Sequence record: MW879344.1
Direction: 5' to 3' (one strand)
Length of the DNA stretch: 64,000 bases
Shown here: positions 1 to 64,000 of the stretch, piece by piece
Position numbering within the stretch: the stretch's first letter is position 1
Layout: each line of letters opens with the position of its first letter
Made by a program: the position numbers and the translations under genes
Notes under the pieces: model-generated
Seen by the model: the letters and a program-made list of their open reading frames with translations, nothing else
Databases searched by the model: none
What the model was told of the DNA's origin: nothing

Positions 1-37
1 TATTTTTGACTCCATGTTGTTTATATTACATTCTTTT

Positions 38-62
38 AAGGCCACGCAATGTGGCCTTTTTT
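38..62 (+). terminator. Rho-independent terminator
   Basis: aaggccac-gcaat-gtggcctt followed by a T run. Confidence 0.7.
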
Positions 63-76
63 ATTGGAAAAATAAA

Positions 77-802
77 ATGATTAACAAAGAAGAAGTAAGT
101 AAAGCAGCACGAGAAATTGTTCATCACATTATTCTAGATAATATCTATGGATATTTCGAAGAATTAGGTACACCAAATATTGTTGTGTACGGTTCATTCA
201 TCGAAATGACTTCTGGTTTTGATGTGAAGCCAAATGATATTGATGTTACGATTGTACTTGATGGGGAGTTACCTGAACCACGTCATAAATCATTCTATTT
301 AAACTTTGTTGAACTACCAATTAATGTAGAGTATATGAGTCGTGAATCATTTCAAAAAGAATTGCATTCATTTCAACCAAAGTACTTTATGTGCACAGCT
401 ACTCCTGAACTAAGTGAAGAAATTGATTCTGTATGGAAGAATAAAGAAATTCACGAAGTACGTTCTGGTATAAGTTCAGTAACTTCCAAAGCCTTTGATA
501 AAGGTCGTAAAAAACTACTAGTTGAAGATGACTATGATGAAGTACTAGGATTAAAAAATATCTATCATGCGTTTAAGTTTCCAATTTATGCTAAATGGCA
601 TTTCTATCCAGAATTGGCTGAACGTGATTATATTACAGACATTCAGTACTTGAATGAGATTCATAAAGGAATTTATGAGGCTTACAATAATAGTACTGGC
701 ACATTAGAAGAACGTTGTGCGGCGGTTGTACAATTTGCTAAACCACATCATTTATCATTGATGACTGGCTTCCGCATACTATTTCCTAAAAAGGTAGAAT
801 AA
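77..802 (+). CDS. Putative Pol-beta-superfamily nucleotidyltransferase
   Basis: GS...DxD motif (VYGSF...PNDIDVTIV); start moved from ORF-track 14 to ATG at 77, because 14-76 overlaps the terminator. Confidence 0.5.
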   Translation: MINKEEVSKAAREIVHHIILDNIYGYFEELGTPNIVVYGSFIEMTSGFDVKPNDIDVTIVLDGELPEPRHKSFYLNFVELPINVEYMSRESFQKELHSFQPKYFMCTATPELSEEIDSVWKNKEIHEVRSGISSVTSKAFDKGRKKLLVEDDYDEVLGLKNIYHAFKFPIYAKWHFYPELAERDYITDIQYLNEIHKGIYEAYNNSTGTLEERCAAVVQFAKPHHLSLMTGFRILFPKKVE

Positions 803-1014
803 TGATAGTGTTTATAATTATTGGAATGGTTTTATTATTTCTATTTGGCCTCGCTGCTATTATTGGAAGTGTTATTATTCCAATGTATGTATGTGCATGG
901 ACAGGAAAAGTATCAAAGGGTGAGATTGCAATCAGTATTATAATGTTTGTAATTGGTGCATTTTCATGGTACTATGTGTTTTCTCATATGAGTCTCAACA
1001 TAGGTATTAGTTAA
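802..1014 (+). CDS. Small membrane protein
   Basis: 70 aa, two hydrophobic segments; TAATG overlap with upstream stop. Confidence 0.6.
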   Translation: MIVFIIIGMVLLFLFGLAAIIGSVIIPMYVCAWTGKVSKGEIAISIIMFVIGAFSWYYVFSHMSLNIGIS

Positions 1015-1151
1015 TGGGTGAAATTATTTTTGCATTAATTGAATGTTTAGTTGAATTAATGTGTATGGGTGCAGCAGGATTTTGGATTGTTATGTGTATT
1101 TTAGCAATTGCTGCTGTTGCTGGTTTTGGTTATTGGGCATATATTTGTTAA
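1014..1151 (+). CDS. Small membrane protein (45 aa, not in ORF track)
   Basis: MGEIIFALIECLVELMCMGAAGFWIVMCILAIAAVAGFGYWAYIC; TAATG-coupled to the previous gene. Confidence 0.5.
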   Translation: MGEIIFALIECLVELMCMGAAGFWIVMCILAIAAVAGFGYWAYIC

Positions 1152-1228
1152 GGAATTAAAATGATATTACTTATAAAAGGGCGAATGACTTTCCGATTAT
1201 GAATTTTTAATCATAATAAGGAGGACAT

Positions 1229-1771
1229 ATGTTCTTTAAGCAAAAATTTAAAATCTGCTATGATAATGGCAATTTCGTAGAAGTTGATGATTTATTAGGA
1301 TATATTGGTTACACTTACGGTGCAGCCGAAGCATTCTACCAAAGAATGAAATTCACTGTTAAAATTGATAAAAGTAGCTTCTGGTCATATTCACATTCAA
1401 GTATGAATGATTTGGTTCAAACATTTTACTTATTCACTGAAAACAATATCATGATTTCTCCTGAATTGTTTAAAGGTGAGTACTTAAAATATCGTAATCT
1501 AGAAACTCAAATTTGGCACAGAAATCGTTTATATTCAATGAAACAATGGCGTCATTTCAATTATCGTCGCAGTCATACGACTACCTATGATCGTCGTATG
1601 GAAACTATCGCAGAACGCCGAGCTATTGCTGGTGTTGTGAAAGAAGAAGGTGAACCAGAATTTCGTGGTCGCCGCCGTTGTATTCCTAATCCGTGGGATG
1701 ATATAATGGCTCGTCGCAGTCTTTCTTGGAAAGATTGTACAAAAAGAAAACGTCAATATAAAGGAAGCTAA
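1229..1771 (+). CDS. Hypothetical protein with basic C-terminus
   Basis: Strong SD aaggagg; C-terminal RGRRRCIPNPWDD...SWK...RKRQY motif. Confidence 0.7.
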   Translation: MFFKQKFKICYDNGNFVEVDDLLGYIGYTYGAAEAFYQRMKFTVKIDKSSFWSYSHSSMNDLVQTFYLFTENNIMISPELFKGEYLKYRNLETQIWHRNRLYSMKQWRHFNYRRSHTTTYDRRMETIAERRAIAGVVKEEGEPEFRGRRRCIPNPWDDIMARRSLSWKDCTKRKRQYKGS

Positions 1772-1785
1772 ATGCTTCCTTTTTT
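1761..1785 (+). terminator. Rho-independent terminator
   Basis: aaggaagc-taaat-gcttcctt + T run. Confidence 0.7.
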
Positions 1786-1798
1786 CTTAGGAAAAATC

Positions 1799-2620
1799 AT
1801 GAACTCTGATGATCTATTACAAGCACGAACATTACTAAATGAACTTACTGTTGAAGGTCGAAGCTTTGCTGCAACTCGTTATATGTTTAATAACGAACCA
1901 TCATACCAAGATAACAAATATTCATCTGAATTAATTAACTGGATGAATACAAATAATCTAATAGTACTATCCAGTACTTACGATTTAGATTCCTACTATA
2001 CTGTTGAAATTTTTTCAGTTACTGAATTAGGTACATGTATTTCATGGTTCCTTTCATTGACAGAATATTATAATGCAGGTGTAGATGGTGAAGATAATTT
2101 TAGATCTGCGGGTCAAGCATTGTTTACTATTATGAATAAGTACAATGAAACTGAACTTGAACCATTGATTAGTATTATCACAGTTGAAGAACAAGAAGCG
2201 TATCAACATTTTTACCGTACCCAAATTTGGGATGCAATTGGTAATCGCGGAACAACAACTCGTACTCGTGAAGAAGCATTACAAGCAATTGAAGTTTCGA
2301 AAGGTCTTCTACCTATGTTTGAAATGTCAGTACTTCTTGGTGCTCGTGGTACTGATCCTACCCGTACTAACAACTATGTATTCAAAAAATGTATGGAAGA
2401 ATTGGGTGAAATGGCACTAGAAGATCAGATCGAAAATGGCCTTTCATATAAAGATGCTGGTTCTGATGGGGTTGCTGGAGAAGCGGTTGACCTTGCTATT
2501 TGTGCAATGGATATGTTTGCATTACAGCATGGTCATTTAAATCCTGAAGAAATTCAAGAGAGATTTATTGAGTATATGAATAAAAAATTAAACAAATGGA
2601 AAAGTACTTTAGGGAAATAA
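1799..2620 (+). CDS. Protein with C-terminal MazG-like NTP pyrophosphatase domain
   Basis: KCMEELGEM...GEAVDLAICAMD (EExxE...ExxD pattern); start at ATG 1799 after SD agga. Confidence 0.6.
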   Translation: MNSDDLLQARTLLNELTVEGRSFAATRYMFNNEPSYQDNKYSSELINWMNTNNLIVLSSTYDLDSYYTVEIFSVTELGTCISWFLSLTEYYNAGVDGEDNFRSAGQALFTIMNKYNETELEPLISIITVEEQEAYQHFYRTQIWDAIGNRGTTTRTREEALQAIEVSKGLLPMFEMSVLLGARGTDPTRTNNYVFKKCMEELGEMALEDQIENGLSYKDAGSDGVAGEAVDLAICAMDMFALQHGHLNPEEIQERFIEYMNKKLNKWKSTLGK

Positions 2621-2621
2621 T

Positions 2622-3236
2622 ATGACAGATCATGCAAAGACAAAAGCGTTATTGGACGTTCTTGCAGAAATGAATCAACAAGATGAAAAATGGGGTGCTG
2701 ATAGAAATCAACATCCTTTTCTATGGCAAGTTATTTTAGGTGAAGAATTTGGTGAAGTTTGTCAAGCAATTTTGCATGATGAATTTGGTGGTTCTCATGC
2801 AGGTACAGCACGTGAGGAATTAGTACAAGTCGCTGCTGTAGCCTTGCAATTTATTGAACAGTATGATAGACTAAACGCAGTTCAGAACGTAAATCGTGAA
2901 CCAAAATTGGTTATTCTTGAATCTCCATTTGCTGCCACCGATGAACACACTGTACAAGAAAATATTGAATATGCACGGAAATGTGTTCGACATTCTCTTT
3001 CGTTAGGTGAAGCACCAATTGCAAGCCACCTACTTTACACTCAAGATGGAATTTTGGATGATAATATTCCAGAAGAACGTCAATGGGGTATTGATGCTGG
3101 ATTAGCATGGAAAGAAGTTGCACAATGTTCAGTTGTTTATATTGACCGTGGAATTAGTAAAGGTATGGAATATGGTATCAAGGCTGCTGAACAAGCAGGA
3201 CTTACTATTGAATATCGTAAAATTGAGGAAGAATAA
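2622..3236 (+). CDS. MazG-like domain fused to a nucleoside-deoxyribosyltransferase-like (DUF4406-type) domain
   Basis: N-term ILGEEFGEV...EELVQVAAVA; C-term VILESPF...GEAPIASHLLY...GISKGMEYGI. Confidence 0.6.
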   Translation: MTDHAKTKALLDVLAEMNQQDEKWGADRNQHPFLWQVILGEEFGEVCQAILHDEFGGSHAGTAREELVQVAAVALQFIEQYDRLNAVQNVNREPKLVILESPFAATDEHTVQENIEYARKCVRHSLSLGEAPIASHLLYTQDGILDDNIPEERQWGIDAGLAWKEVAQCSVVYIDRGISKGMEYGIKAAEQAGLTIEYRKIEEE

Positions 3237-3514
3237 TGAATATCCGTCCAGTATATAATCATATTATTGCAAAGAAATATGTAAATGAACCAAAAAGTGC
3301 AGGTGGTATTTTACTTACAGCTAGTGGAGAGGATGAATCAACTCATGCTGAAGTAATATCTATTGGTAGTGCTTATAAAGGTGATATTAAAGTTGGTGAT
3401 ATTGTTTCTTACCTTGATGATAAACGTGTTCATATTGAAAAAATTGAAAATGAATATCTATTAATCATGCCAGAAGATTGTGTTCTGGCGGTAATTGAAA
3501 AAGAAGGCGAATAA
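3236..3514 (+). CDS. groES: GroES/Cpn10 co-chaperonin
   Basis: IRPVYNHIIAK...SAGGILL...EVISIG...IKVGDIV...YLLIMPEDCVLAVI. Confidence 0.85.
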   Translation: MNIRPVYNHIIAKKYVNEPKSAGGILLTASGEDESTHAEVISIGSAYKGDIKVGDIVSYLDDKRVHIEKIENEYLLIMPEDCVLAVIEKEGE

Positions 3515-3515
3515 C

Positions 3516-4778
3516 ATGCATAAGGCGTTGGTAGAATTACAAGCTCGTGGTCTAATTAATCAAAGTACTGAACTTTCAGTATTATCTTCTCTACTTGAGA
3601 AGGGTTCTTCAGTGTATTGTGGTTTTGATCCAACGGCTGACTCATTGCATATTGGTAGTCTTCTACCTCTCATGACTCTGAAAGTCCTTAAAGATCACGG
3701 AGTTCATGTTATTGCACTTGTTGGTGGGGCAACTGGTCGTATTGGCGATCCAAGCTTTAAAGCACAAGAACGGCAAATGCTAACTGAAGAAATGGTAGAC
3801 CGAAATATTGCGGGAATTACTTCTGTAATTCGCAAATTTCTTGGTTCAGATACATTAATTGTGAATAATCACGATTGGACAAAAGACATTTCAGTACTTG
3901 ATTTCTTGCGAATATACGGTAAATGCTTTACTGTTAATAACATGATTTCTAAAGAAGCAGTTCGTTCTCGCATTGAACGACCAGATCAAGGAATTTCATT
4001 TACTGAATTTACTTATCCAATTCTTCAAGGAATGGATTTTGAACATCTATTTAATATTGGATGTTCTATTCAAATTGGTGGTTCAGACCAATGGGGTAAT
4101 ATGATTGCTGGAACTGACTTGATCCACAAGATGCACGGTAATGATGCTGAAGTGGGGGTTATTACTTTACCCCTACTATTAAAATCGGATGGTACTAAAT
4201 TCGGTAAATCAGAATCTGGAACTGTATGGTTAAGTCCTAATCATACTTCTGCATATCACATGTATCAATTCTGGTTGAATGTTACGGATGATGAAATGAT
4301 TACCATGTACCAGTACTTTAAACCAATGTCATTTTCGGTCGATGTTGTAAAAACAGAAATGGAACAAAACGTAGTACTAATGAAGAAACAATTTGCTTAT
4401 AGCATGACTGCATTAGTTCATGGTACTGATAAAGCCGATCAAGCATATAAAGTTAGTCAATTCTTGTTCGGTGCAAAAATTGAACTTGATATTGAGTCAA
4501 TTAATATGATGGTGGATTCTGGTATGGAATCGACTACAATTATTGAACCAATAGGATTGATTTCACTATTGGTCGAAACTGGTCTAGCATCGTCTAATAA
4601 AATGGCTCGTGAGTTCATTACTAATGGTGCCGCTAAGATTAATGGTCGCAAAATTAATGAGTTCTACGATCCAGTACAATATGAATTTACTGAAGATGTT
4701 GATATATATGACAACCGTTATTTTGTTCTACAACGTGGTCGTGATAATTTTGTAATTATTCGAAATGGGAGGATTTAA
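3516..4778 (+). CDS. tyrS: Tyrosyl-tRNA synthetase
   Basis: YCGFDPTADSLHIGS (HIGH), ALVGGATGRIGDPS, QIGGSDQWGN, KFGKSE (KMSKS), C-terminal S4-like domain; start at ATG 3516. Confidence 0.95.
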   Translation: MHKALVELQARGLINQSTELSVLSSLLEKGSSVYCGFDPTADSLHIGSLLPLMTLKVLKDHGVHVIALVGGATGRIGDPSFKAQERQMLTEEMVDRNIAGITSVIRKFLGSDTLIVNNHDWTKDISVLDFLRIYGKCFTVNNMISKEAVRSRIERPDQGISFTEFTYPILQGMDFEHLFNIGCSIQIGGSDQWGNMIAGTDLIHKMHGNDAEVGVITLPLLLKSDGTKFGKSESGTVWLSPNHTSAYHMYQFWLNVTDDEMITMYQYFKPMSFSVDVVKTEMEQNVVLMKKQFAYSMTALVHGTDKADQAYKVSQFLFGAKIELDIESINMMVDSGMESTTIIEPIGLISLLVETGLASSNKMAREFITNGAAKINGRKINEFYDPVQYEFTEDVDIYDNRYFVLQRGRDNFVIIRNGRI

Positions 4779-4780
4779 TA

Positions 4781-5245
4781 ATGTCACAAACATACACAGC
4801 GGTACTGTACCGTTACAACCACTCAGATTACTGTCGTGGTTGTTTAATGGGTTCATCTGATTCTGATTTGAAAATTTATACTGGAACTTCACAGCAAGAT
4901 ATTATTGATATGATTTTACCAGTACTTGTTGAATCTAAATTAAATTCTGATAAGCATTATGAATATGCTGAATATGAACCAATTATTTTCTTTAACGGTA
5001 TTACTGATGGTTATAGTGGATACGAAGAAAATTCAGCATTTGTGAATACTTTTGCACAACAATACTTAAATGAAGTACGGGGAATGCTAGATACTCAACT
5101 TACACAGGCAATTACTGAAGCTCGTAAAGAAGTTAAAATACAAGAAGAACGTAAAGCTCGTGAAAATGCAGAATTAAATCGTCAACGTGCTGAAGAAGAA
5201 GAAAGAGCAGAATTTGAACGTTTGAAATCTAAATTTGGTGAATAA
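4781..5245 (+). CDS. Hypothetical protein with C-terminal coiled coil
   Basis: Tightly packed ORF, 154 aa. Confidence 0.65.
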   Translation: MSQTYTAVLYRYNHSDYCRGCLMGSSDSDLKIYTGTSQQDIIDMILPVLVESKLNSDKHYEYAEYEPIIFFNGITDGYSGYEENSAFVNTFAQQYLNEVRGMLDTQLTQAITEARKEVKIQEERKARENAELNRQRAEEEERAEFERLKSKFGE

Positions 5246-5494
5246 ATGAAAATATTTCTTGTAATTGTTGCCATGTTTATGTTATCATCTTGCCGAGTTG
5301 AATCTGATTCAACCAGTTCACCTGTATTTTCAGGAATTGTAAAACAAGATCCTCGCATTGTCACGGCAGATTTTGAAATGGACAATAATAAGTATCATTG
5401 TTTTAGTTTCGACCCCACTAAAGACAATTTAATTTTTATGTGTAAGAAGGTTAAAAATGAAGAAAATTCTTCTAGCTCTACTAGTACTAACTAG
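5246..5494 (+). CDS. Putative lipoprotein
   Basis: MKIFLVIVAMFMLSSC signal peptide/lipobox. Confidence 0.55.
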   Translation: MKIFLVIVAMFMLSSCRVESDSTSSPVFSGIVKQDPRIVTADFEMDNNKYHCFSFDPTKDNLIFMCKKVKNEENSSSSTSTN

Positions 5495-5645
5495 TACTGC
5501 ATGTACCAGTGTAAGTAATGGTTCATACGAAACGTATAGTCCATTTAATACTGATGCTGGTTATAATTGTGCAGTTGAAAGTTCAGACATATATCTCATT
5601 AATGGTGTACCATCTTTGAAATATATTTGTAATAAGGTAAAATAA
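5457..5645 (+). CDS. Putative lipoprotein
   Basis: MKKILLALLVLTSTAC signal peptide/lipobox. Confidence 0.55.
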   Translation: MKKILLALLVLTSTACTSVSNGSYETYSPFNTDAGYNCAVESSDIYLINGVPSLKYICNKVK

Positions 5646-6175
5646 TGGAAATAACACGTTCATGGGCGATGCCGAATAAGAATACTTTTTCGATTAAGCC
5701 TATAAGGGATTTTATTGAACGCGAACTATCGAAAGCAGAGTTGATTGAAGGTGCAGTACTTGTTGATGCGTTTGCTAACAATAGCGTCTTCAATCCTCGC
5801 TTAACATATACAAATGATTTAGATCCTGATATGCCAACAACACATCATATGGATGCGTTGGAGTTTCTTAAATCGTTAGAAACAGGTTCAGTAGATTTTC
5901 TACTATTCGACCCACCATATAGTCCACGACAAGTTTCAGAATGTTATAAAAGTTTAGAAATGACTGTTAACATGCAAACTACACAATCAAGCTTTTGGGG
6001 TAATCTAAAGAAAGAGATTGCAAGAGTTATGAAAAGTGGTGGTGTAGTAATGACATTTGGTTGGAATAGTGGCGGTATTGGGAAAACTGCTGGATTTGAA
6101 ATTGATGAAATCCTTTTAGTTGCACATGGTGGTTGGCATAATGATACCATCATAACTAAAGAAATTAAAAAATAA
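5645..6175 (+). CDS. Small adenine-specific DNA methyltransferase
   Basis: FLLFDPPYS motif IV; LVDAFAN SAM-binding-like motif; HGGWHNDTI tail. Confidence 0.75.
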   Translation: MEITRSWAMPNKNTFSIKPIRDFIERELSKAELIEGAVLVDAFANNSVFNPRLTYTNDLDPDMPTTHHMDALEFLKSLETGSVDFLLFDPPYSPRQVSECYKSLEMTVNMQTTQSSFWGNLKKEIARVMKSGGVVMTFGWNSGGIGKTAGFEIDEILLVAHGGWHNDTIITKEIKK

Positions 6176-6181
6176 GAATTG

Positions 6182-6300
6182 AGAAATACAAAGCCGTGCC
6201 TCTGGCAAAATCCAGTATAAGTCCGTTTACGCTTCATCGCAAGTACTGAGAGAATATTCCTACTCGTTAGCACTACCAACTCTTGGGGCGTTGTATTTCT
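6182..6300 (-). ncRNA. Candidate ~120-nt structured small RNA (family not recognised)
   Basis: Intergenic; ends pair (agaaatacaa 6182-6191 / ttgtatttct 6291-6300, then gcc/ggc); internal hairpins; G-U wobbles fit the minus strand better. Confidence 0.35.
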
Positions 6301-6326
6301 TTTAAGTTAACTATAGAGAGACAAAA

Positions 6327-6962
6327 ATGAATATATGTGAAAAGTACTGGTGGATTTCACATCACCCAAAAATTGTTGATTTCGCTGATTCAGCAATTAT
6401 CGAAGTTACCCCACACATGGTTTGTCCAGAAACAAATCAAATTGAAAATTTATCAATTTTGAATACAAAGTTGCAGTTTTGGGTCGAATTCATGACTCCA
6501 CATTTCGATGAACAATTTGAAATTCACGGTCATGCACATGATTGGGAATTAGATTGTGGTGGTGATACATGGGAAGAAGCAATCGAAGCCTTGTACCAAG
6601 GAGTACTTGCAAAGTACGGTGATTATACACAAGAAGACTTAGACAAGCAACGAGAAGAAGCAATGAAGGATTTTGATGCTGATGAATTCTTTGCTAAAGC
6701 TACCGTATTGAAAACTGAACCAGAAGAACGAAAACCATTAGAAGATTATGAAATCGATGCATTTAAACGTGACATTGAACATATTAAAAAATTACTACCA
6801 GTACTATCAAATAAACTTAAAGATGCTAACTTAACAATGCAAGAATATGCAGATGTTGAATTGGAAATTATCTGTGCTGACCGTGATTTGTACGTTGCAA
6901 CAAAATCATTGGAATGTGGTTACGATGTTGAAGTATATGGTATTACGGATGAAAATAACTAA
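6327..6962 (+). CDS. Hypothetical protein
   Basis: 211-aa ORF with SD-like gagag. Confidence 0.7.
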   Translation: MNICEKYWWISHHPKIVDFADSAIIEVTPHMVCPETNQIENLSILNTKLQFWVEFMTPHFDEQFEIHGHAHDWELDCGGDTWEEAIEALYQGVLAKYGDYTQEDLDKQREEAMKDFDADEFFAKATVLKTEPEERKPLEDYEIDAFKRDIEHIKKLLPVLSNKLKDANLTMQEYADVELEIICADRDLYVATKSLECGYDVEVYGITDENN

Positions 6963-7314
6963 ATTGGTTGGTATATTGAAAGATATGCCACAAAAAAAGA
7001 AATCCAGTTCTACACGTAAACGTTATACAATTATTGCGTGTGCACTAGATAAAAAAGGGCGAGTACTATCTATGAGGACAAATGATTATAATTGTTCTCA
7101 CCCATTACAAAAGTACTTTGCAGAGCAAGTAGGGAAACCAGAAGCAATATTTCTTCATGCTGAAGTCGCAACATTAATAGCAGCCCGAAAAGAAGTTCAT
7201 AAATTGCTTATTGCACGAATAGATGTGAAAGGTAACCCATTACCTGCGAAACCATGTCCAATCTGCGAAAAAGCAATTGCAGCATTTGGGGTAAAGGAAA
7301 TTGAGTACACATAA
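6949..7314 (+). CDS. Zinc-dependent cytidine/dCMP-deaminase-fold protein
   Basis: LHAE...PCPIC motif; start moved to ATG 6949 (MKITK). Confidence 0.75.
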   Translation: MKITKLVGILKDMPQKKKSSSTRKRYTIIACALDKKGRVLSMRTNDYNCSHPLQKYFAEQVGKPEAIFLHAEVATLIAARKEVHKLLIARIDVKGNPLPAKPCPICEKAIAAFGVKEIEYT

Positions 7315-7546
7315 ACATTTAGATGAAATAATTCAACTATTAACGGATGAATCAGATACTTATATTAGTACTGTTAAGTTTTTACATTCGATGATGATTG
7401 AAGCTAAAGAAGCTGGTACATATAACAGAAAGGATTTTAGTGCTGCATTATTAGTGCATAATTGCTTACGTAATAAGTACAAGCAAGATTTTAACGGCGA
7501 ATTACTTTCTTGGTATCGTCGTTTTATAGGACTATACGACAACTAA
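7301..7546 (+). CDS. Hypothetical protein
   Basis: 81 aa; overlaps upstream stop, SD aagga. Confidence 0.6.
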   Translation: MSTHKHLDEIIQLLTDESDTYISTVKFLHSMMIEAKEAGTYNRKDFSAALLVHNCLRNKYKQDFNGELLSWYRRFIGLYDN

Positions 7547-7556
7547 TAGGGAACAT

Positions 7557-8111
7557 ATGAAAAATACAATCATTGTGAACTTAGTTGGTGGACCATGTTG
7601 CGGTAAGAGTACTACCGCAGCAGGACTATTCGCTAAGATGAAATTACATACTAAGCAACAAGTTGAAATCGTAACAGAAGTCATTAAAGATTATGTATAC
7701 GATGAAAATAAAATGGCTATGCAAGATCAAGTACTAATTACTGCAAACCAAAATCACCGCCTATTCCGGTTAAAAGGAAAGGTGGATTTTGTCGTTTCTG
7801 ATGCTTCCCTTTTGAACGGAATTGTATATAATGAGTTTTATCATGACATGGAAAATATCAGTTCAAGAGTAGCGTTTCAATTGTACGAACAGTACGAGAA
7901 TATAGTATTTTTGCTTCCACGTAAACCAGAATACGATCAGTACGGTCGTACACAAACACTTGAAGAAGCAAAAGAACTTGACCGTTTATTTGTTGAAAAT
8001 TTAGAACATTTACGTATTCCATATATTGATATGCGTGAATACACACATGAAGAAATGCCTGATCGTATTATTGATGTTCTAAGCAATCGTTTTGGATTTG
8101 ACGTTCATTAA
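7557..8111 (+). CDS. NadR/AAA_28-type P-loop kinase/ATPase
   Basis: IVNLVGGPCCGKSTT Walker A; VVSDASLL; GRTQT. Confidence 0.7.
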   Translation: MKNTIIVNLVGGPCCGKSTTAAGLFAKMKLHTKQQVEIVTEVIKDYVYDENKMAMQDQVLITANQNHRLFRLKGKVDFVVSDASLLNGIVYNEFYHDMENISSRVAFQLYEQYENIVFLLPRKPEYDQYGRTQTLEEAKELDRLFVENLEHLRIPYIDMREYTHEEMPDRIIDVLSNRFGFDVH

Positions 8112-8169
8112 AAATTATATTTTATCAACTTTTTTATATTGGGTAAACGTTGACCTAAGTATTAAAAAC

Positions 8170-8212
8170 TTGATCTAGATCAAAGATAATACCCCTTCAT
8201 ATGGGGTATTAT
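8170..8212 (+). promoter_or_regulatory. FNR box with class II promoter upstream of nrdD
   Basis: TTGAT-ctag-ATCAA at 8170-8183 (perfect consensus); TATTAT -10 at 8207-8212 puts the box centre near -41.5. Confidence 0.65.
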
Positions 8213-8259
8213 ATATTTTAAGTGCGTAAATAATTCACCTTAACAGACACGGAGCGTCA

Positions 8260-10083
8260 ATGATGAATAATGATAGATTGTATAGTGACATTAACGAATT
8301 TCTAAACCAAAGTAATAAAGATCTTCTAAATGAGAATGCTAACAAAGATGCCAAGATTGTAAACACTCATAGAGACTTGCTTGCTGGCATTCTTTCCAAG
8401 CATTGGGCTGAAGATATTCTTTCTGAAGATTTAATGCAATGGCATAAAAATGGATATGGTCACATACATGATCTGGATTATTTTATTAGTCCTTTAACAA
8501 ATTGTTGTTTAGTAAATTACAGAGATATGTTAGAGAATGGATTTAAAATCGGTAATGCACAAGTTGGGACTCCTAATAGTATTGGAGTTGCTAGTACTAT
8601 ATTGACTCAAATTGTACTCGCCGTATCAGCTAGTCAATATGGAGGTCAAACATTAGCACATATTGACTATGGTCTTGAGCCATACGTTCAGAAGTCCTAT
8701 GAGAAGCTACAGCAGCTTCAAACAGAATTCAACCTACCGGATGAATATGTGGAAAAAGCCTTACAGAAGGAAGTGTATGATGCTATGCAAGCCCTCTTGT
8801 ATCAAGTTAACACCATCACGTCTAGTAATGGACAAACGCCATTTGTGACAATAAGTTTAGGATTAAATAAATCCAAATTTGGTCAAATGATAACTGATTC
8901 ATATTTGAAAGTACATGAAAAAGGTTTAGGTGTTGATGGCAATACTCCAGTATTTCCTAAAGTAGTTTTCTTCCTTGAAGATGGTGTTAATCTTAAACCT
9001 GAAGATCCAAATTACTTTTTAAAAGAACAAGCTATGCGTACTGCATCCAAAAGAATATATCCAGACTTTGTTTCAGTACCATTGAATAGAAAGGTCACTG
9101 GCTCAAAAAGTGTTCCTGTATCACCAATGGGATGCCGTTCATTTTTAAGTAAATGGGAAGATGATAGCGGTACTGAACAGTATGATGGTAGATTCAATCT
9201 TGGTGTAGTTTCTATTAACTTACCACTACTTGCATTAGAATCCGAATCAGATGGTGATTTCTTTGGTAAGATCGATCATCATATGAATATGGCCTATAGA
9301 GCACAGATGAACCGTGTAGAACGTCTTAAAAAGATGAAAGCACGGCAGAATCCAACAATGTTTATGGAAGGTGCAATTGCCCGTTTAGGAGCAGATGATA
9401 CTATTGATAAATTATTTTATGATGGATATGCTAGTATTAGTATTGGGTTCGTTGGATTAGCTGAATGTTCAGAAATCATAAAAGGGCATTTGAACAAAGA
9501 TTATTGTAAGTCTATTTTACATTATATGAAATATAAATGTGAGCAATTCAAAAAGGACAGTACTTTATCATTTAGCTTATATGGAACACCAGCAGAAAGT
9601 TTATGTTATAAATTTGCTAAATGTATTGAATTGAAGTATCCAAATGTTTTAAAACGTGACTTTATTACAAATTCATTCCATCAACCTGTGTGGGTAGAAA
9701 GTACTCCATTTAGTAAGTGGGATTATGAAGAAAGTTTTGCATATCTAAGTAATGGTGGTAATATAAGTTACGTAGAAACACCAAATCTATCTAACAATAT
9801 TAAGGCACTTGAAACCTTAATTGACTATGCGTATGATAGAATTCCATATTTTGGTATTAACCAACCAGTTGATAAATGCTATAAATGTGATTTTGAAGGT
9901 GAATTTGCTGTAGATAAAATTGGTTTCCATTGTCCATCATGTGATAATAGAGAAGAAGGTACTATGTCAGTAATTAGACGAGTATCAGGTTATCTAAGTG
10001 CACCTAATAGTAGAGCGTTCAATACTGGAAAACAACAAGAAGTTATTCAGAGAGTAAAACATGAAAGACAATCGAAAGAATGA
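8260..10083 (+). CDS. nrdD: Anaerobic (class III) ribonucleoside-triphosphate reductase
   Basis: GHIHDLD, TNCCL, QTPF, PMGCRSFL, GRFNLGVVSINL, YGTPAESL, CxxC..CxxC, RRVSGYL glycyl-radical loop; T4-like short form without ATP cone. Confidence 0.95.
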   Translation: MMNNDRLYSDINEFLNQSNKDLLNENANKDAKIVNTHRDLLAGILSKHWAEDILSEDLMQWHKNGYGHIHDLDYFISPLTNCCLVNYRDMLENGFKIGNAQVGTPNSIGVASTILTQIVLAVSASQYGGQTLAHIDYGLEPYVQKSYEKLQQLQTEFNLPDEYVEKALQKEVYDAMQALLYQVNTITSSNGQTPFVTISLGLNKSKFGQMITDSYLKVHEKGLGVDGNTPVFPKVVFFLEDGVNLKPEDPNYFLKEQAMRTASKRIYPDFVSVPLNRKVTGSKSVPVSPMGCRSFLSKWEDDSGTEQYDGRFNLGVVSINLPLLALESESDGDFFGKIDHHMNMAYRAQMNRVERLKKMKARQNPTMFMEGAIARLGADDTIDKLFYDGYASISIGFVGLAECSEIIKGHLNKDYCKSILHYMKYKCEQFKKDSTLSFSLYGTPAESLCYKFAKCIELKYPNVLKRDFITNSFHQPVWVESTPFSKWDYEESFAYLSNGGNISYVETPNLSNNIKALETLIDYAYDRIPYFGINQPVDKCYKCDFEGEFAVDKIGFHCPSCDNREEGTMSVIRRVSGYLSAPNSRAFNTGKQQEVIQRVKHERQSKE

Positions 10084-10477
10084 AACTTGTTATCGTAGAT
10101 GGGTGTTCGATAAGCCTAAAAACGGTAAGAAAAGAGAAAAAACATATTTTCCAAAGGGCAAGAAAATGCCCTTAAAAAAAGCATTTGATATTGTAGTGCA
10201 AGGATTACTTGCAGGAAAAGGTTTACATCCATCTGTTGATTATATCTGGTACGCAGAGAAAATTTCAGCAGAATGTAATGTTCATGTTGATTTAGTTCGT
10301 CAAGTACTACATAAATTAAATCTAGAGGGATGTTGCTCTAAAAGAATACTGTGGGATGCTAGAGGTGGAATGTTCGCCATGCATACACGGTTAGATTGGG
10401 GTGACGCAGTAGTTCCTTGGGAAGCAAAAGAGTATCATGTAAATATGGATAAACTTAAAGAGAAATATGGAAAATGA
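10061..10477 (+). CDS. Hypothetical protein
   Basis: 138-aa ORF overlapping the nrdD stop. Confidence 0.55.
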   Translation: MKDNRKNETCYRRWVFDKPKNGKKREKTYFPKGKKMPLKKAFDIVVQGLLAGKGLHPSVDYIWYAEKISAECNVHVDLVRQVLHKLNLEGCCSKRILWDARGGMFAMHTRLDWGDAVVPWEAKEYHVNMDKLKEKYGK

Positions 10478-10644
10478 TTCAATATGTAATTACTGAAGGA
10501 ATACATACTGGAACTATATTTTCTATTATAATGTCAAGAAGTGTTGTTTTGAAATCTGACACTATTCCAGTTGGTACATTGCTATCAAATATACCAGATG
10601 ATGAACGCATGAAAATGAGATTTAGAGTTTATGATCCCAATTGA
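10474..10644 (+). CDS. Small hypothetical protein (56 aa, not in ORF track)
   Basis: ATGA overlap with previous stop; fills the gap. Confidence 0.45.
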   Translation: MIQYVITEGIHTGTIFSIIMSRSVVLKSDTIPVGTLLSNIPDDERMKMRFRVYDPN

Positions 10645-11140: not shown

Positions 11141-11144
11141 TAAA

Positions 11145-11507: not shown

Positions 11508-11513
11508 TGTAAC

Positions 11514-11562
11514 AAAACTCCCTTTATATGATAAATAAAATCATGGTTGTAAAGGGAGTTTT
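11514..11562 (+). promoter_or_regulatory. SD-sequestering hairpin with late-promoter motif in the loop
   Basis: aaaactcccttta (11514-11526) / taaagggagtttt (11550-11562); TAAATA at 11532-11537. Confidence 0.7.
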
Positions 11563-11565
11563 AAT

Positions 11566-60722: not shown

Positions 60723-61097
60723 ATGATACCAAAAACCAACAGTACTGAAATCCAATTTGATGTATTAGTAAAAATCAGAGAAGTTTATGAATTTGATTCA
60801 GAACTCTCTGATAGAATGTTACTTATATCTATTTTTGATAATTACAGAACTGGTGGTGGTCTTAGGTTGAGTAAGCTGGGGTACACTATCTGTGCAGAAA
60901 ATAATTTGTATGATTTCACCCCCATTCCTATTAAAAGTCAGGATCGCAACTCAATGGTTTATACCTCACTAGACCGTATTTGCACTAGCCCCTATTATAT
61001 AAAAGGGGATGTTTTGTACTTATCTGACGAATTAGTTTTGGCACAACTCACGTTCTGCCGTGACGATTTTATGAAATTATTTGCTGCATTTATGTGA
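60723..61097 (+). CDS. Hypothetical protein
   Basis: Start moved to ATG 60723; GGLRLSKLG motif. Confidence 0.6.
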   Translation: MIPKTNSTEIQFDVLVKIREVYEFDSELSDRMLLISIFDNYRTGGGLRLSKLGYTICAENNLYDFTPIPIKSQDRNSMVYTSLDRICTSPYYIKGDVLYLSDELVLAQLTFCRDDFMKLFAAFM

Positions 61098-61123
61098 AAC
61101 ACAAAATAAAAATCTGGTATAAT
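61094..61123 (+). promoter_or_regulatory. Promoter, 18-bp-spacer class
   Basis: GTGAAAC...TGGTATAAT. Confidence 0.65.
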
Positions 61124-61154
61124 AAGCTCATTAAGACAGTTTATGGATTAATTA

Positions 61155-61185
61155 AAGGCACTGAGAAATCAGTGCCTTCTCTTTT
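61155..61185 (+). terminator. Leader hairpin/terminator upstream of the MoxR gene
   Basis: aaggcactga-gaaa-tcagtgcctt + ctctttt. Confidence 0.6.
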
Positions 61186-61241
61186 GGCAAATGGATTTGT
61201 GAATTTCAATACAGTAACCACAACACATAGGTATAAGAAGT

Positions 61242-62573
61242 ATGAGCGAAAAAACTAACGTAGATATTCTAAAGTATGATTTGAAACCATCCCAAATTTT
61301 TGAAGCAATGCAAGTTGCAGATTATGTTGGTGATAGTATGATGATTTGGGGTTCTCCTGGTATTGGTAAATCCGCAATTGCACGTCAATATGCAAATGAA
61401 CAGTATCCCCTTCGTAAAGATAACCAAGGAAAATTAGCATATCTACTTCAACGTGCCGAAGATCCTGAAGATAACCTAGTTTCAATGGCTGATTATACAG
61501 AGTTTGCTAACTCATTACTAGATCAAGAAACTAACTTTATCGACTTCCGACTATCACAGATTGAACCATCGGATCTCCGAGGTATTCCAATTCCAGTAAA
61601 AATGTACTACAATCTTGAAGGTGAACAGATTTTAGAATCTGAACTACCAAATTACCCAATGTATCGTACTGAAACATCCGTTGTTTGGGCTGCACCAGAT
61701 GTTCTAAAACTACATCCTAATTGGAAAGGTGTAATTCTATTTGACGAAATCAACTCAGCAATGCCAATTGTTCAAGCTGCATCATATCAGCTAATTCTTG
61801 ATCGTTGTGTTGGTGATATGGTACTACCAAAAACTGCATTAATTCTTGCAGCAGGTAACCGTGAAACGGATGGTGGTGTAACTTTCAGTCTTGCAACTCC
61901 ATTACGTGACCGTATGACACACGTTGAAATGATTCCAGATTATAATGATTGGATTGAACATTATGCAATTCCTAACCGAATCAATGCAGGTACTGTTGCG
62001 TATATCAAGAATACTGGTACAAAACATTTTAACACACTAAGTCCAAAAGATACCAGTCATGCAGGTGGTGCAAGTCCTCGTTCATGGACTCGTGTTTCTG
62101 AAATTGAAACGGCTCGTAAACGTCTAGGCACTTCTTCACCAGTATATAAAGCTCTTGTAGCAGGTCGTGTTGGGAACGCAGCAGCAATTGACTATATCAC
62201 GTATATTGAAAACATGGCTGATCTACCGGATGCAATGGATATTATGGACGGTACATTTACTGACTTCAGTAACTATGTAACTGACGTATCTAAGAACTAC
62301 TTTATTGTACTAAATCTAGTGTATAAAATCATTGAATTCAATACTGCTAAAATTGAAGGTACTATTACTAAAGAACAATGGTGCACGTACTGTACTAACT
62401 TCTTAACGTTTATTGATGATAATTTCTCTAAAACACAAGCAGAACTAATTGTACACGCAGTACGTACTTTCACAGATGCAAACGTTAATATCGCTTACTC
62501 TGAAGTTCCAGTATTCAAAACCTTTGTTCAGAAATATGGTCCACTTCTTCGTAAAGTACGTACAATGAAATAA
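61242..62573 (+). CDS. MoxR-type AAA+ ATPase
   Basis: WGSPGIGKS Walker A, DFRLSQIEPSDLRGIP, ILFDEIN Walker B, AAGNR, LRDR, ASPRSW. Confidence 0.88.
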   Translation: MSEKTNVDILKYDLKPSQIFEAMQVADYVGDSMMIWGSPGIGKSAIARQYANEQYPLRKDNQGKLAYLLQRAEDPEDNLVSMADYTEFANSLLDQETNFIDFRLSQIEPSDLRGIPIPVKMYYNLEGEQILESELPNYPMYRTETSVVWAAPDVLKLHPNWKGVILFDEINSAMPIVQAASYQLILDRCVGDMVLPKTALILAAGNRETDGGVTFSLATPLRDRMTHVEMIPDYNDWIEHYAIPNRINAGTVAYIKNTGTKHFNTLSPKDTSHAGGASPRSWTRVSEIETARKRLGTSSPVYKALVAGRVGNAAAIDYITYIENMADLPDAMDIMDGTFTDFSNYVTDVSKNYFIVLNLVYKIIEFNTAKIEGTITKEQWCTYCTNFLTFIDDNFSKTQAELIVHAVRTFTDANVNIAYSEVPVFKTFVQKYGPLLRKVRTMK

Positions 62574-62579
62574 TACTTT

Positions 62580-62603
62580 AGGGGCATATATTGCCCCTTT
62601 TTC
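62580..62603 (+). terminator. Terminator between MoxR and vWA genes
   Basis: aggggca-tatat-tgcccct + T run. Confidence 0.65.
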
Positions 62604-62615
62604 TATGAGGTTTAT

Positions 62616-63965
62616 ATGAAAAAAGAAAAACATGTAGTATCTGATGCATATGCAGCAGAATGCTACGAACGAATTATTATTGCACGTACTGCGATGATTA
62701 TGTCTTGTCCATTCTTTGGAATTTTAGCTGCAAGACTACAATTAGTACCTAATAATACATGGTGCCGTACTTTAGCAGTAGATGGTAAACACTTGTACTA
62801 TAATGTTGAATTCATTATGGGAGTTGAAGACCCTGCTCGTCGTCAAGAGTATGAAGACAAACTTAAAGAATCTATTGATGGGATTACTGCTGAACAAATC
62901 AACGATGCATTAAATGGATTAACACATCAAAATCTATTGGCTGCAATTTGTCATGAGATTCTACACTGTGCATATAACCACTTTTTAAGACGTGGTGCAC
63001 GTAATCCTAAAAAATGGAACCAAGCAGCAGACTACGCCATTAACCAAATCATAAATCGTGATAAAAAAATGGGTGAAATTAAGAAGTCGTGGTTATTCAA
63101 AGCTGAATACGATGGAATGACTGCTGAAGAAATCTATAATATCTTAGAAGAACAAGATGGAAACGGTGGTGGGGGTTCTGGTTCTGGTGGTGGGACTTTA
63201 GATCAACATGACATTCCACAACAAGGCGATGATCAATCAGATGATGGGGACAGTTCTGGTGATTCTGGAATACCAGGATATAGTACTGAAGAATTAGAAT
63301 CATTCATGGAAGAATTTAAAGATGCTATGCTAAGTGCGGCAATGGCTGAAGGTGCACCACAAGAAATTCGTGCAATGATCGATGAGTATAAAACTCCTAC
63401 TATTGATTGGCGTTCTAAACTAAATCGTACTATTCGTTCATTGATTAAAAATGATGTATCTTATATGATGCCATCTCGCCGTTCATGGAGTACGGGTTTT
63501 GGAAGTACTGGTTCATATTATGGTTCTCCAATTTATCCAGGTTTAAAACCAGATTTGGATATTGATATTTGTGTTGCATTAGATGCATCAGGTAGTATTA
63601 GTACTGAAATGCTAAAAGATTTCTTGTCTGAAGTAATGGGTATGACTAAACAGTTTAGTCAGTTCAAGATTCGAATATTGACATTTGATACTAATGTTTA
63701 TACAGTACGAGATTACGTTACTGGTGAAGAACGTAAGATTCTTGAATATCCAGTAACTGGTGGCGGTGGTACGTTATTCACTGCTGTTTGGGATCATATG
63801 AAGGAAGATGACTATTGTCCAAAACAATTAGTTATGTTCACTGATGGAGAACCTTGGGGTTCTTGGGGAGATCCTACATATTGTGATACTTTATTTATTA
63901 TTCACTCGAATCCAAAGATTGAAGCACCATTTGGTACTACAGTGCATTATGAATTAGAGAAGTAA
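62616..63965 (+). CDS. DUF2201-type protein: HExxH metallopeptidase-like domain + vWA
   Basis: TLAVDG, CHEILH, WNQAADYAIN, ALDASGSI (MIDAS), GGGGT, FTDG. Confidence 0.85.
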   Translation: MKKEKHVVSDAYAAECYERIIIARTAMIMSCPFFGILAARLQLVPNNTWCRTLAVDGKHLYYNVEFIMGVEDPARRQEYEDKLKESIDGITAEQINDALNGLTHQNLLAAICHEILHCAYNHFLRRGARNPKKWNQAADYAINQIINRDKKMGEIKKSWLFKAEYDGMTAEEIYNILEEQDGNGGGGSGSGGGTLDQHDIPQQGDDQSDDGDSSGDSGIPGYSTEELESFMEEFKDAMLSAAMAEGAPQEIRAMIDEYKTPTIDWRSKLNRTIRSLIKNDVSYMMPSRRSWSTGFGSTGSYYGSPIYPGLKPDLDIDICVALDASGSISTEMLKDFLSEVMGMTKQFSQFKIRILTFDTNVYTVRDYVTGEERKILEYPVTGGGGTLFTAVWDHMKEDDYCPKQLVMFTDGEPWGSWGDPTYCDTLFIIHSNPKIEAPFGTTVHYELEK

Positions 63966-63979
63966 CAATACTAAATAAA

Positions 63980-64000
63980 AGGTCGCTAGGATGGCGACCT
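63980..64000 (+). terminator. Hairpin at window edge (probable terminator)
   Basis: aggtcgc...gcgacct; the T tail would lie outside the window. Confidence 0.5.

Follow-up and report, generated by a model that had tools for sequence, protein, structure and literature searches.

Dense maintenance of the palindrome AGTACT in Rak2-like jumbo phages of Enterobacterales, a candidate duplex-DNA recognition site

The window, the whole stretch of 64,000 nucleotides that was analysed, corresponds to bases 62001-126000 of the genome of Erwinia phage pEa_SNUABM_49 (Eneladusvirus), a Rak2-like jumbo myovirus, and carries AGTACT about once per 376 bp. Some DNA-level process keeps this palindrome in the genomes of the phage clade. 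The reading preferred here, at a probability of roughly one in three, is that AGTACT is a duplex-DNA recognition site for a putative symmetric factor of the phage clade, with its density held by selection. No earlier description of the excess in these phages was found in the literature.

1 to 64000, no strand: AGTACT palindrome, 170 copies, with 168 within genes (all three frames) and 3 wholly intergenic.

Excess over null models, reading frames and spacing

Dinucleotide-preserving shuffles of the window (n=100) gave 15.7±4.0 copies (maximum 27) against the 170 observed, base composition gave 21.5, and third- and fourth-order Markov models gave 68 and 143, the last of these already including the inflated pentamers AGTAC and GTACT. 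The 168 genic copies compare with 40.3±5.9 when synonymous codons were shuffled per gene (z=21.8), 22.8±4.7 when codon order was shuffled, and 99.5±5.8 in a third-position shuffle that keeps protein, codon usage, and dinucleotides together (z=11.9). A sequence-only reading of the window had claimed strong over-representation and had set beforehand, as the result that would overturn it, a ratio close to 1 under a null that preserves codons and dinucleotides; given these z values, the ratio is not near 1 and the excess stands. Sixteen of the 17 positions it had listed for bases 1-6000 are exact, and 3563 should be 3564. Its expectation of about 2 copies per 6 kb agrees with base composition (2.0), and its GC estimate of 31% was wrong, the actual value being 33.9%. 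It had also named GTAC as the over-represented core. Under the codon null, however, only AGTACT is enriched among the 16 NGTACN words in the window (O/E 4.3, z=23.5), with the other 15 at 0.7-1.55; the hexamer accounts for all of the GTAC excess, and GTAC alone is therefore not enriched. ACTAGT showed no enrichment under the codon null. No extended flank consensus was found around AGTACT, and a strict six-base palindrome of this kind is typical of recognition by Type II-like or dimeric proteins. All other G+C-containing palindromes are avoided in the phage genome, and short palindromes other than AGTACT, which lies about nine-fold above expectation, are almost entirely purged from it.

Within the window genes the site falls in the frames AGT-ACT (80), xxA-GTA-CTx (61), and xAG-TAC-Txx (27), each 3.4- to 9-fold over the codon null, which upholds the earlier claim that no one dipeptide explains it. 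Ser-Thr dipeptides are encoded AGT-ACT in 80 of 141 cases in the window, with 20 expected, and AAG encodes 29 of the 35 Lys preceding TAC, as against 20% of Lys overall. Ser-Thr itself occurs at 1.52x and Val-Leu at 1.44x, whereas the reversed Thr-Ser and Leu-Val lie at 0.95x and 0.94x, so that the protein sequence is bent too. In phage BF, the AGT-ACT share of Ser-Thr dipeptides is 0.48-0.69 in every genome region and AGTACT density is the same for genes on the plus and minus strands. The force works at the DNA level, whatever the frame or gene strand, consumes about half of the synonymous opportunities for AGTACT genome-wide, and pushes proteins toward Ser-Thr and Val-Leu where these are tolerated. 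The view that codon usage, dipeptide content, or base composition generates the excess, for which the common codons AGT, ACT, and GTA and the fourth-order Markov expectation could be cited, is refuted by the two codon-aware nulls and retains practically no probability; the enrichment in all three frames, the unenriched Thr-Ser, Leu-Val, ACTAGT, and other NGTACN words, and the depletion of AGTACT in phages T4 and PA5oct, which are of similar GC content, also speak against it.

Spacing between sites is near-Poisson in the window (CV 0.92) and the sites are distributed uniformly within genes, a poor fit to the discrete packaging signal that had been suggested as a role. Intergenic DNA totals 3.3 kb of the window. 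Two local features are as follows.

1963 to 1978, no strand: AGTACT pair, 10 bp apart, an example of a close pair.
60747 to 63281, no strand: longest AGTACT-free stretch, 2.5 kb, including an AAA ATPase gene.

Further close pairs lie at 5483/5493, 30782/30792, and 35406/35417, and such pairs show no excess over a Poisson process in the window. The AAA ATPase gene (61242-62573) has no AGTACT in 1332 bp. The gene at 62616-63965, previously called a homing endonuclease, is actually that of a DUF2201 metallopeptidase/VWA protein.

Clade range, conservation and methyltransferases

The whole genome of phage BF contains 1072 copies with 121 expected, and the excess is even across all 357 kb, including far from the ends. 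Enrichment is 6- to 7.5-fold in Yen9-04, CBB, GAP32, SP27, and RaK2; the relatives with an excess include phages of Yersinia, Pectobacterium, Cronobacter, E. coli, and Klebsiella. Asteriusvirus and Alcyoneusvirus gave 86 copies against 14.7 expected and 117 against 16.9, respectively. There was no excess in T4 (7, 17 expected), in the Pseudomonas relative PA5oct (3, 16.6 expected), both thus depleted, or in Cellulophaga phage phi18:3 (18, 17 expected). Across related genomes, AGTACT is conserved in position at 59/42/39% compared with 37/26/25% for any hexamer, and synonymous positions are conserved in 74 of 86 cases inside the site (86%) versus 414 of 610 outside (68%; p=4e-4). Existing sites are preserved above background; individual sites turn over, yet density is constant across four genera. 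The earlier proposal of a phage-specific, maintained process holds up on this clade restriction, synonymous conservation, and constant density. All of the conservation tests run on AGTACT would give the same outcome under a repair or conversion bias as under selection.

Every AGTACT-rich genus infects Enterobacterales, and PA5oct is without excess; this would also suit a factor common to these hosts that reads AGTACT, for example the nucleoid-occlusion protein SlmA, whose binding site GTGAGTACTCAC has AGTACT at its centre. Since the phage clade and its host range go together, the PA5oct result cannot tell host from clade. T4, although a phage of E. coli, is depleted, and the SlmA flanks are the rarest here: the SlmA-like context GAGTACTC surrounds 5 of the 1072 sites, and the full 12-bp site occurs 0 times. 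A host reader is accordingly regarded as highly improbable, and by this context the sites do not qualify as SlmA-binding sites.

A link to methyltransferases had also been inferred, and the window encodes two such proteins.

24969 to 25829, plus strand: N6_N4 DNA methyltransferase (PF01555), 286 aa, whose SPPY catalytic motif is that of N4-cytosine enzymes.
5645 to 6175, plus strand: small DPPY methyltransferase-like protein (phrog_11619), 176 aa, found among AGTACT-rich genera in Eneladusvirus only.

The closest solved relative of the SPPY enzyme is M.PvuII (E=4e-19), and its bacterial relatives pair with EcoO109I-type endonucleases. The enzyme may well modify some palindrome, but its distribution does not match the AGTACT excess. 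Among AGTACT-rich genera it is confined to Eneladus- and Mimasvirus, with no homologue in Asterius- and Alcyoneusvirus at E<=1e-20, and the DPPY protein is likewise absent from these two equally rich genera, so the link fails for the window's own enzymes. Phage phi18:3, too, carries a 52%-identical methyltransferase and shows no excess. A Dam-type methyltransferase (PF05869) is common to all four AGTACT-rich genera, and its family is widespread in unrelated phages. In the RaK2 paper, methylation is stated as unspecified only (PMC3622015).

These data bear on a drive of the kind considered for HIP1, in which AGTACT would be marked by a methyltransferase and near-sites would be converted to the methylatable site by mismatch or very-short-patch type repair that depends on the methyl group; the palindrome would then accumulate with no function of its own required. 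The comparison with HIP1 made in the sequence-only reading is apt as to statistics, namely occurrence in all frames and both in and between genes, and conservation above background (PMC5861425, PMC4390886). Consistent with such a drive, the genome holds three methyltransferase-like genes, one of the SPPY N4-cytosine type whose relative M.PvuII recognises a 6-bp palindrome; A>G at position 2 and T>C at position 5 make up most of the differences between lineage-private sites and their counterparts; and lineage-private mobile endonuclease genes have 0 AGTACT in 1.2 kb. Against it, the position 2/5 bias is about as predicted from abundant AT-rich neighbour words, the T:G donor words expected to be consumed are without clear depletion under the codon null (AGTATT O/E 0.94, AATACT 0.79; combined 75 observed, 86 expected), no Vsr- or MutH-like gene was found in the BF annotation, and the SPPY, DPPY, and phi18:3 distributions do not follow the excess. 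We regard this drive as unlikely.

Terminal repeats, early promoters and the proposed recognition site

AGTACT density peaks in the direct terminal repeats: three genera have 6.4-6.6 copies per kb there, compared with 2.2-3.5 per kb in adjoining DNA, and the non-coding DNA of the repeats reaches about 10 per kb. At 93 sigma70-like promoter matches in the repeats, Asteriusvirus included, AGTACT adjoins the -35 element in 38 and the -10 element in 38. The early promoters are laid out as AGTAC running directly into TTGCAA, then AGTACT beside TATAAT or TGTATAAT, the two lying 20-22 bp apart. Occupancy at the two promoter positions is 41%, compared with about 3% of T positions in the intergenic DNA of the repeats, a difference that a uniform methylation-repair drive leaves unexplained. 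Because the promoters form a repeated family, part of this uniformity may reflect common descent. The promoter sites lie upstream of the transcription start, and this, together with the density in non-coding repeat DNA, is difficult to reconcile with an RNA-level signal, in which AGUACU would serve in mRNA as a cleavage, binding, or pairing motif. That 168 of the 170 copies are in transcribed coding sequence and that the clade has many genes for RNA repair and modification would suit such a signal; the top-enriched hexamer, however, is a perfect palindrome (64 of 4096 hexamers are palindromic), as recognition of duplex DNA predicts, and an RNA-level role is hardly credible.

Canonical Chi (GCTGGTGG) is also clustered in the terminal repeats in one orientation (10 vs 2 in fEgEco12, 7 vs 2 in CBB), where fewer than 0.1 copies per repeat are expected; in BF, 6 of 18 copies lie at 6.7-18 kb, a segment without any copy in the reverse orientation. 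Nuclease and recombination pressure on the ends is evident from this. AGTACT could be a Chi-like end signal that attenuates a helicase-nuclease or stimulates recombination independently of orientation; as a palindrome it would work from either genome end, both of which bear the same direct repeat, and the genome encodes gp46/47-type recombination nuclease subunits and UvsX- and DprA-like proteins. To our knowledge, however, no known Chi sequence is palindromic, no cognate nuclease for AGTACT was found, and neither the even excess over all 357 kb far from the ends nor the placement at promoters is accounted for. An orientation bias like that of canonical Chi in the same repeats is ruled out for AGTACT, since a palindrome has no possible orientation. 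A Chi-like role is considered distinctly doubtful.

For the preferred reading, recognition of AGTACT by a symmetric factor, the reader would be a protein or enzyme with twofold symmetry that the enterobacterial Rak2-like jumbo phages share, either phage-encoded or brought in with the virion, and selection would maintain a high genome-wide density as a kind of self-mark. AGTACT occurs about once per 330 bp in phage DNA compared with about once per 4 kb expected in host DNA. One factor would presumably read both promoter and genome-wide sites: at promoters, it or a methyl mark that it places may gate early transcription, and elsewhere the benefit would depend on density. Among those compared, no binding protein, nuclease, or methyltransferase had a distribution uniquely matching the excess. 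A regulator normally needs tens of sites, as against about 1000 placed evenly through coding DNA, which is an observation against the recognition-site view. In a more specific and speculative form, which we think improbable, AGTACT would mark as self, in either orientation, the DNA of a phage lineage whose direct terminal repeats are long, and a putative phage factor (nuclease attenuator, methyl mark, or DNA coat) would use this palindromic signal to tell phage from host DNA and to switch immediate-early promoters; if true, phages would thereby encode their own counterpart to genome tagging of the Chi or DUS type.

HIP1-type iterated palindromes have gone unexplained for thirty years, partly since cyanobacteria are slow to manipulate, and AGTACT places a signal of this kind in lytic phages of laboratory-tractable Enterobacterales. 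The 357 kb genome, the clear phylogenetic boundary (trait present in four genera and absent from PA5oct and T4), the contrast with palindrome avoidance elsewhere in the genome, and the two AGTACT per terminal-repeat early promoter make it a sharp test case. Its reader, once found, could reveal a new form of phage self-marking or protection of DNA, or a new repair bias. AGTACT-rich phages are biocontrol candidates against Erwinia and Pectobacterium, and some 1000 ScaI/Eco255I-type sites would, if unmodified, make them extremely sensitive to any host whose restriction enzyme has this specificity.

Comparison with known systems

HIP1 (GCGATCGC) and the alternate highly iterated palindromes of cyanobacteria are of unknown function (PMC5861425, PMC4390886). 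Like HIP1, AGTACT is a short perfect palindrome, many-fold in excess, far above codon-aware nulls as well, and present about once per few hundred bp, in all frames and outside genes, with sites conserved above background. Unlike HIP1, which occurs in cellular genomes at 15- to 300-fold, it is a 6-mer with two G+C in an AT-rich phage genome at about 9-fold, coexists with a near-total purge of other palindromes, and belongs to an early-promoter consensus. HIP variants are accompanied by a methyltransferase that recognises the palindrome or its core (Elhai 2015); the AGTACT excess is tracked by neither the SPPY nor the DPPY enzyme, and PF05869 is clade-wide but widespread elsewhere. HIP-type palindromes are distributed periodically at 10-90 kb (Xu et al. 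2018). Local spacing of AGTACT is Poisson-like, and the genome spans only 357 kb.

Like Chi and KOPS, AGTACT is a short word dense in coding DNA, as through selection on a DNA-enzyme interaction, and it shares its enrichment in the terminal repeats with canonical Chi; neither Chi nor KOPS is symmetric, both are biased in orientation, and only they have a known cognate translocase or nuclease. The USS and DUS of Pasteurellaceae and Neisseria are genome-wide self tags, at about one per kb or denser, that shape codons and peptides and are read by a specific protein. AGTACT, as a candidate genome-wide tag, similarly bends codon choice and peptide content. USS/DUS, however, are 9-12 nt, non-palindromic, and serve DNA uptake by competent cells, and we know of no analogous uptake step for a phage.

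AGTACT is identical to the target of the Type II enzymes ScaI and Eco255I, and M.ScaI belongs to the same N4-cytosine methyltransferase class as the phage SPPY enzyme. Restriction-modification targets are normally avoided by phages, and methylation would explain tolerance of AGTACT but not a nine-fold excess. A protected Type II site does not fit, as the SPPY enzyme is missing from half of the AGTACT-rich clade. In Dam-sensitive promoters (IS10 pIN, Mu mom), a methylatable palindrome overlaps the promoter hexamers; by analogy, AGTACT at promoter hexamers could, if methylated, tie promoter activity to replication state, although in IS10 and Mu just one site or a few are concerned rather than about 1000.

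Abundance of AGTACT in the window and its unit

The window corresponds, at 100% identity, to bases 62001-126000 of Erwinia phage pEa_SNUABM_49 (MW879344.1), a 358-kb Rak2-like jumbo myovirus of the species Eneladusvirus BF, and all 95 of its annotated genes are carried on the plus strand. The following phages were used for comparison.

Relatives used for comparison
Serratia phage BF: ~99% identity
Yersinia phage fHe-Yen9-04 (Yen9-04): 86% identity
Pectobacterium phage CBB and Cronobacter phage GAP32: Mimasvirus, 82% identity
E. coli phages SP27 and fEgEco12: Asteriusvirus
Klebsiella phage RaK2: Alcyoneusvirus

The over-representation of the palindrome AGTACT claimed by the sequence-only reading was confirmed, with 170 occurrences in 64 kb; 16 of the 17 coordinates listed in that reading were exact and one was off by one base. 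For the whole window, dinucleotide shuffles predicted 15.7±4 copies, base composition 21.5, and a third-order Markov model 68, while the fourth-order expectation of 143 comes from a model into which the inflated pentamers are already built. Among all 4096 hexamers, AGTACT ranked first in over-representation. Within genes, 168 copies were found against 40.3±5.9 (z=21.8) under a synonymous-codon shuffle that held per-gene codon usage and each protein constant, and against 99.5±5.8 (z=11.9) under a stricter shuffle that also preserved all dinucleotides and left little freedom; the excess thus survives the codon- and dinucleotide-preserving null that the sequence-only reading had itself named as its refutation test. 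An artefact of codon or dipeptide usage, which ranks low as an explanation, was ruled out by three codon-aware nulls and is also contradicted by Thr-Ser, Leu-Val, ACTAGT, and the 15 other NGTACN words, which served as controls.

Under the codon null, AGTACT alone was enriched among the 16 NGTACN words (TGTACA stood at 0.83, and GGTACC and CGTACG had no occurrences), and therefore the unit of the signal is the whole hexamer, which accounts for the entire GTAC excess, and not the GTAC core that had been proposed. No extended flank consensus was found around the sites in the window. Spacing was approximately Poisson (CV 0.92), with neither regularity nor clustering and with 10-bp pairs no commoner than expected in the window. 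Sites were evenly distributed along genes except for a single drop around the start codon and its ribosome-binding site, and in BF their density was equal for genes of the plus and minus strands.

Enrichment extended to all three frames, in each of which the sequence-only reading had noticed the motif (80, 27, and 61 observed; 23.6, 3.0, and 13.6 expected). In the window, AGT-ACT encodes 80 of the 141 Ser-Thr dipeptides (20 expected), AAG makes up 29 of the 35 Lys codons that precede TAC compared with 20% of Lys codons overall, and CTN makes up 81 of the 101 Leu codons that follow GTA; this context-dependent codon choice is exactly as a DNA-level target would predict. Protein sequence itself is bent by the pressure, Ser-Thr and Val-Leu being present at 1.52 and 1.44 times expectation and the reversed dipeptides at 0.95 and 0.94. 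Across the BF genome, the AGT-ACT share of Ser-Thr dipeptides was 0.48-0.69 in every region (early, replication, and structural), and the Ser-Thr/Val-Leu excess fell from 1.7-1.95 in early genes to ~1.15 in structural genes, which we read as a uniform pressure with a yield capped by protein constraint.

Taxonomic range, palindrome avoidance, and site turnover

The AGTACT excess is a trait common to the enterobacterial Rak2-like genera (Eneladusvirus, Mimasvirus, Asteriusvirus, and Alcyoneusvirus).

AGTACT in the comparison genomes, observed and expected
BF, whole genome: 1072 observed, 121 expected
Yen9-04, 44-50 kb: 110 observed, 16.6 expected
CBB, 44-50 kb: 115 observed, 16.4 expected
GAP32, 44-50 kb: 113 observed, 16.0 expected
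SP27, 44-50 kb: 86 observed, 14.7 expected
RaK2, 50 kb: 117 observed, 16.9 expected
T4: 7 observed, 17 expected
Pseudomonas phage PA5oct, a distant Rak2-like relative: 3 observed, 16.6 expected
Cellulophaga phage phi18:3: 18 observed, 17 expected

Six-base palindromes are missing from the window in 23 of 64 cases, and about 28 of the 64 occur zero to two times in the 357 kb of BF, where observed (expected) counts include GCGC 0 (308), RGGNCCY 2 (77), CCSGG 2 (106), GATATC 1 (121), and CTTAAG 0 (121). Avoidance of palindromes follows a common pattern throughout the enterobacterial Rak2-like genera and differs slightly among them (GGTACC, GATATC, and CCSGG are tolerated in RaK2), and no comparable avoidance was found in PA5oct or T4. 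GATC is depleted in the coding sequence of the window relative to its synonymous-codon expectation (144 vs 202, z=-6.2), despite a Dam-type methyltransferase in the genome.

Site conservation was assessed from codon alignments of 29-45 orthologous genes, using arbitrary hexamers in the same frame as the control. Retention of AGTACT was 59% vs 37% for arbitrary hexamers in Yen9-04, 42% vs 26% in CBB, and 39% vs 25% in GAP32, and was about equal to that of the control in SP27. Where the amino acid was unchanged, the codons AGT, ACT, GTA, and TAC were kept exactly in 74 of 86 cases within sites vs 414 of 610 outside them (p=4e-4). Turnover among four genomes was large, with 19 sites common to all and 23, 13, 19, and 13 private to single lineages; density was nevertheless the same in each genome, and roughly two in three private sites coincided with amino-acid differences. 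Polarising recent gains and losses between pEa_SNUABM_49 and BF yielded 10 events only, which is too few. Mobile endonuclease genes carried 1.8 AGTACT/kb vs 3.0 genome-wide, and those private to one phage carried none in 1.2 kb; the low density is weakly consistent with slow gain of sites after gene arrival. The gene at window 62616-63965, which the sequence-only reading had taken for a homing endonuclease and which is annotated in relatives as an HNH endonuclease, actually encodes a DUF2201 metallopeptidase and VWA-like protein (PF13203, PF09967); it adjoins an AAA-type ATPase gene (61242-62573), and the RaK2 record likens the pair to gp24/gp25 of phage N4.

The pressure on DNA is strand-symmetric, hexamer-specific, and genome-wide, and it is both clade-specific and long-lived; a signal acting at the level of RNA ranks low.

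Methyltransferases of the window

Two genes of the window bear on the methyltransferase (METHYLTRANSFERASE) lead.

Methyltransferase genes in the window
24969-25829, plus strand: 286-aa N6_N4 methyltransferase (PF01555) with an SPPY motif typical of N4-cytosine enzymes; best solved relative M.PvuII
5645-6175, plus strand: 176-aa methyltransferase-like protein (phrog_11619) with a DPPY motif and a degenerate AdoMet-binding motif; annotated as a DNA methyltransferase

A PF05869 Dam-type enzyme, gp063, is also encoded in BF, outside the window. A review has suggested that RNA, rather than DNA, may be the substrate of the unusually small Dam-like enzymes found in some jumbo phages (PMC7824862). 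The SPPY enzyme is restricted to Eneladusvirus and Mimasvirus and the DPPY enzyme to Eneladusvirus; the PF05869 enzyme is present in all four genera (42-100% identity) and belongs to a family common in unrelated phages. The link to methyltransferases suggested by the sequence-only reading did not hold for those of the window, since their distributions differ from that of the excess and phi18:3 encodes an SPPY enzyme of 52% identity while lacking the excess; the window methyltransferases are therefore not necessary and, on present evidence, not sufficient for it. The phages may have acquired them as protection once the genome had grown vulnerable at AGTACT. Isoschizomers of ScaI, such as Eco255I, occur in E. 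coli.

The nearer homologues of the SPPY enzyme, at 48-59% identity, occur as orphan or prophage genes, and no endonuclease adjoins them. In each of the 46 cases scanned (loci L030-L102, on MAG contigs), a more distant bacterial homologue at 35-41% identity lies directly upstream of an EcoO109I-family endonuclease gene (PF14511, ~250 aa), which is on the same strand and begins ~20-100 bp after the methyltransferase gene. The pair forms a widespread m4C-type restriction-modification module of Patescibacteria, Chloroflexota, and others. The EcoO109I-type specificity (RGGNCCY) that these neighbours would suggest for the SPPY enzyme is not one that the phage relies on, because BF avoids RGGNCCY (2 vs 77 expected), and no palindrome was found that is avoided in the genera lacking the methyltransferase but tolerated in those bearing it, which would have been a clue to its target.

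The SPPY gene is flanked by paralogue triplets, three copies of phrog_7868 upstream and three of phrog_10375 downstream (23093-24960 and 27370-28762), and a 96-aa ORF (25826-26116) overlaps its stop codon by 4 nt. RNA repair genes and tRNA-related genes are also densely represented in the window (22345-23115, 26126-27370, 37701-38960, 39383-40909, and 44254-45366), their products comprising a Thg1-like tRNA-His guanylyltransferase, an RlaP-type nucleotidyltransferase, an RNA ligase, a DUF2828 (TROVE-like) RNA-binding protein, and a CCA-adding enzyme.

Terminal repeats, early promoters, and candidate mechanisms

AGTACT density along BF is V-shaped, with 6.5/kb in the first 20 kb (its direct terminal repeat, by correspondence), ~2/kb in the core of structural and replication genes, and ~4/kb at the right end. 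The annotated 22.5-kb repeat of CBB carries 6.4/kb vs 3.5 just outside, and the experimentally confirmed 21-kb repeat of fEgEco12 carries 6.6/kb vs 2.2 in the next 24 kb. Many sites in the terminal repeats are paired, 20-22 bp apart. A search of the BF, CBB, and fEgEco12 repeats for sigma70-like promoters, in which AGTACT was not required, returned 93 matches; the hexamer directly adjoins the -35 element in 38 of these and the -10 element likewise in 38. The resulting early-promoter consensus, AAAAAGTACTTGCAA-N10-AGTACTGTATAAT, defines a conserved, sigma70-like class in which AGTACT is used at fixed positions, an arrangement also present in Asteriusvirus.

Location of the AGTACT early promoters and Chi clusters
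BF (locus L008): promoters 3351-16740; Chi 6669-17957
CBB (locus L110): promoters 20884-29100; Chi 25234-36943
fEgEco12 (locus L111): promoters 2100-20150; Chi 590-19625

In CBB, these promoters have been described as RpoD-like and early, in a paper that leaves the hexamer unmentioned (PMC5259590). One BF example lies at 7750-7790. Other promoter classes elsewhere in BF are without AGTACT. No AGTACT pairs of this promoter type, spaced 20-22 bp apart, were found in the window, and its excess is therefore wholly of the diffuse, coding-sequence kind.

A twofold-symmetric factor would read AGTACT, and the contiguous six-base palindrome without flank information is more characteristic of Type II-like enzymes than of ordinary transcription factors. 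The reading that we favour, at a probability of about 0.35, is that AGTACT is read by a factor of the phage clade and selected for its density, and that the same factor acts at the promoters. Host SlmA ranks low as the reader, and the flanks of the phage sites do not fit the SlmA site. Maintenance by a repair drive of the HIP1 type, acting on T:G precursors, is unlikely: no methyltransferase correlates with the excess, no clear depletion of the donor words AGTATT and AATACT was seen, and in the intergenic DNA of the repeats AGTACT occupies the two promoter positions more than tenfold over other T positions.

Copies of canonical Chi (GCTGGTGG), nearly all in one orientation (fEgEco12, 10 vs 2 opposite; CBB, 7 vs 2 opposite), are concentrated in the direct terminal repeats, where fewer than 0.1 would be expected per repeat. 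In BF, 6 of 18 copies of GCTGGTGG lie at 6.7-18 kb with none there in the opposite orientation, and the whole genome has 30 Chi vs 2 expected. This oriented clustering prompts the idea that AGTACT is a palindromic, Chi-like end signal, which we consider improbable and behind even the repair drive. The probability left over beside these and the clade-specific reader was assigned to mechanisms beyond those named.

No published mention of the AGTACT excess was found in the literature on AGTACT and phage palindromes, CBB, RaK2, and fEgEco12 or in jumbo-phage reviews, although mention elsewhere is possible. The nearest known phenomenon is HIP1, the highly iterated palindrome of cyanobacteria, the statistics of which are alike (PMC4390886, PMC5861425). 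The AGTACT excess differs from HIP1 in being hosted by a virus, in having no cognate methyltransferase that co-occurs with the trait, in standing alongside a near-total avoidance of palindromes, and in forming part of a promoter consensus.
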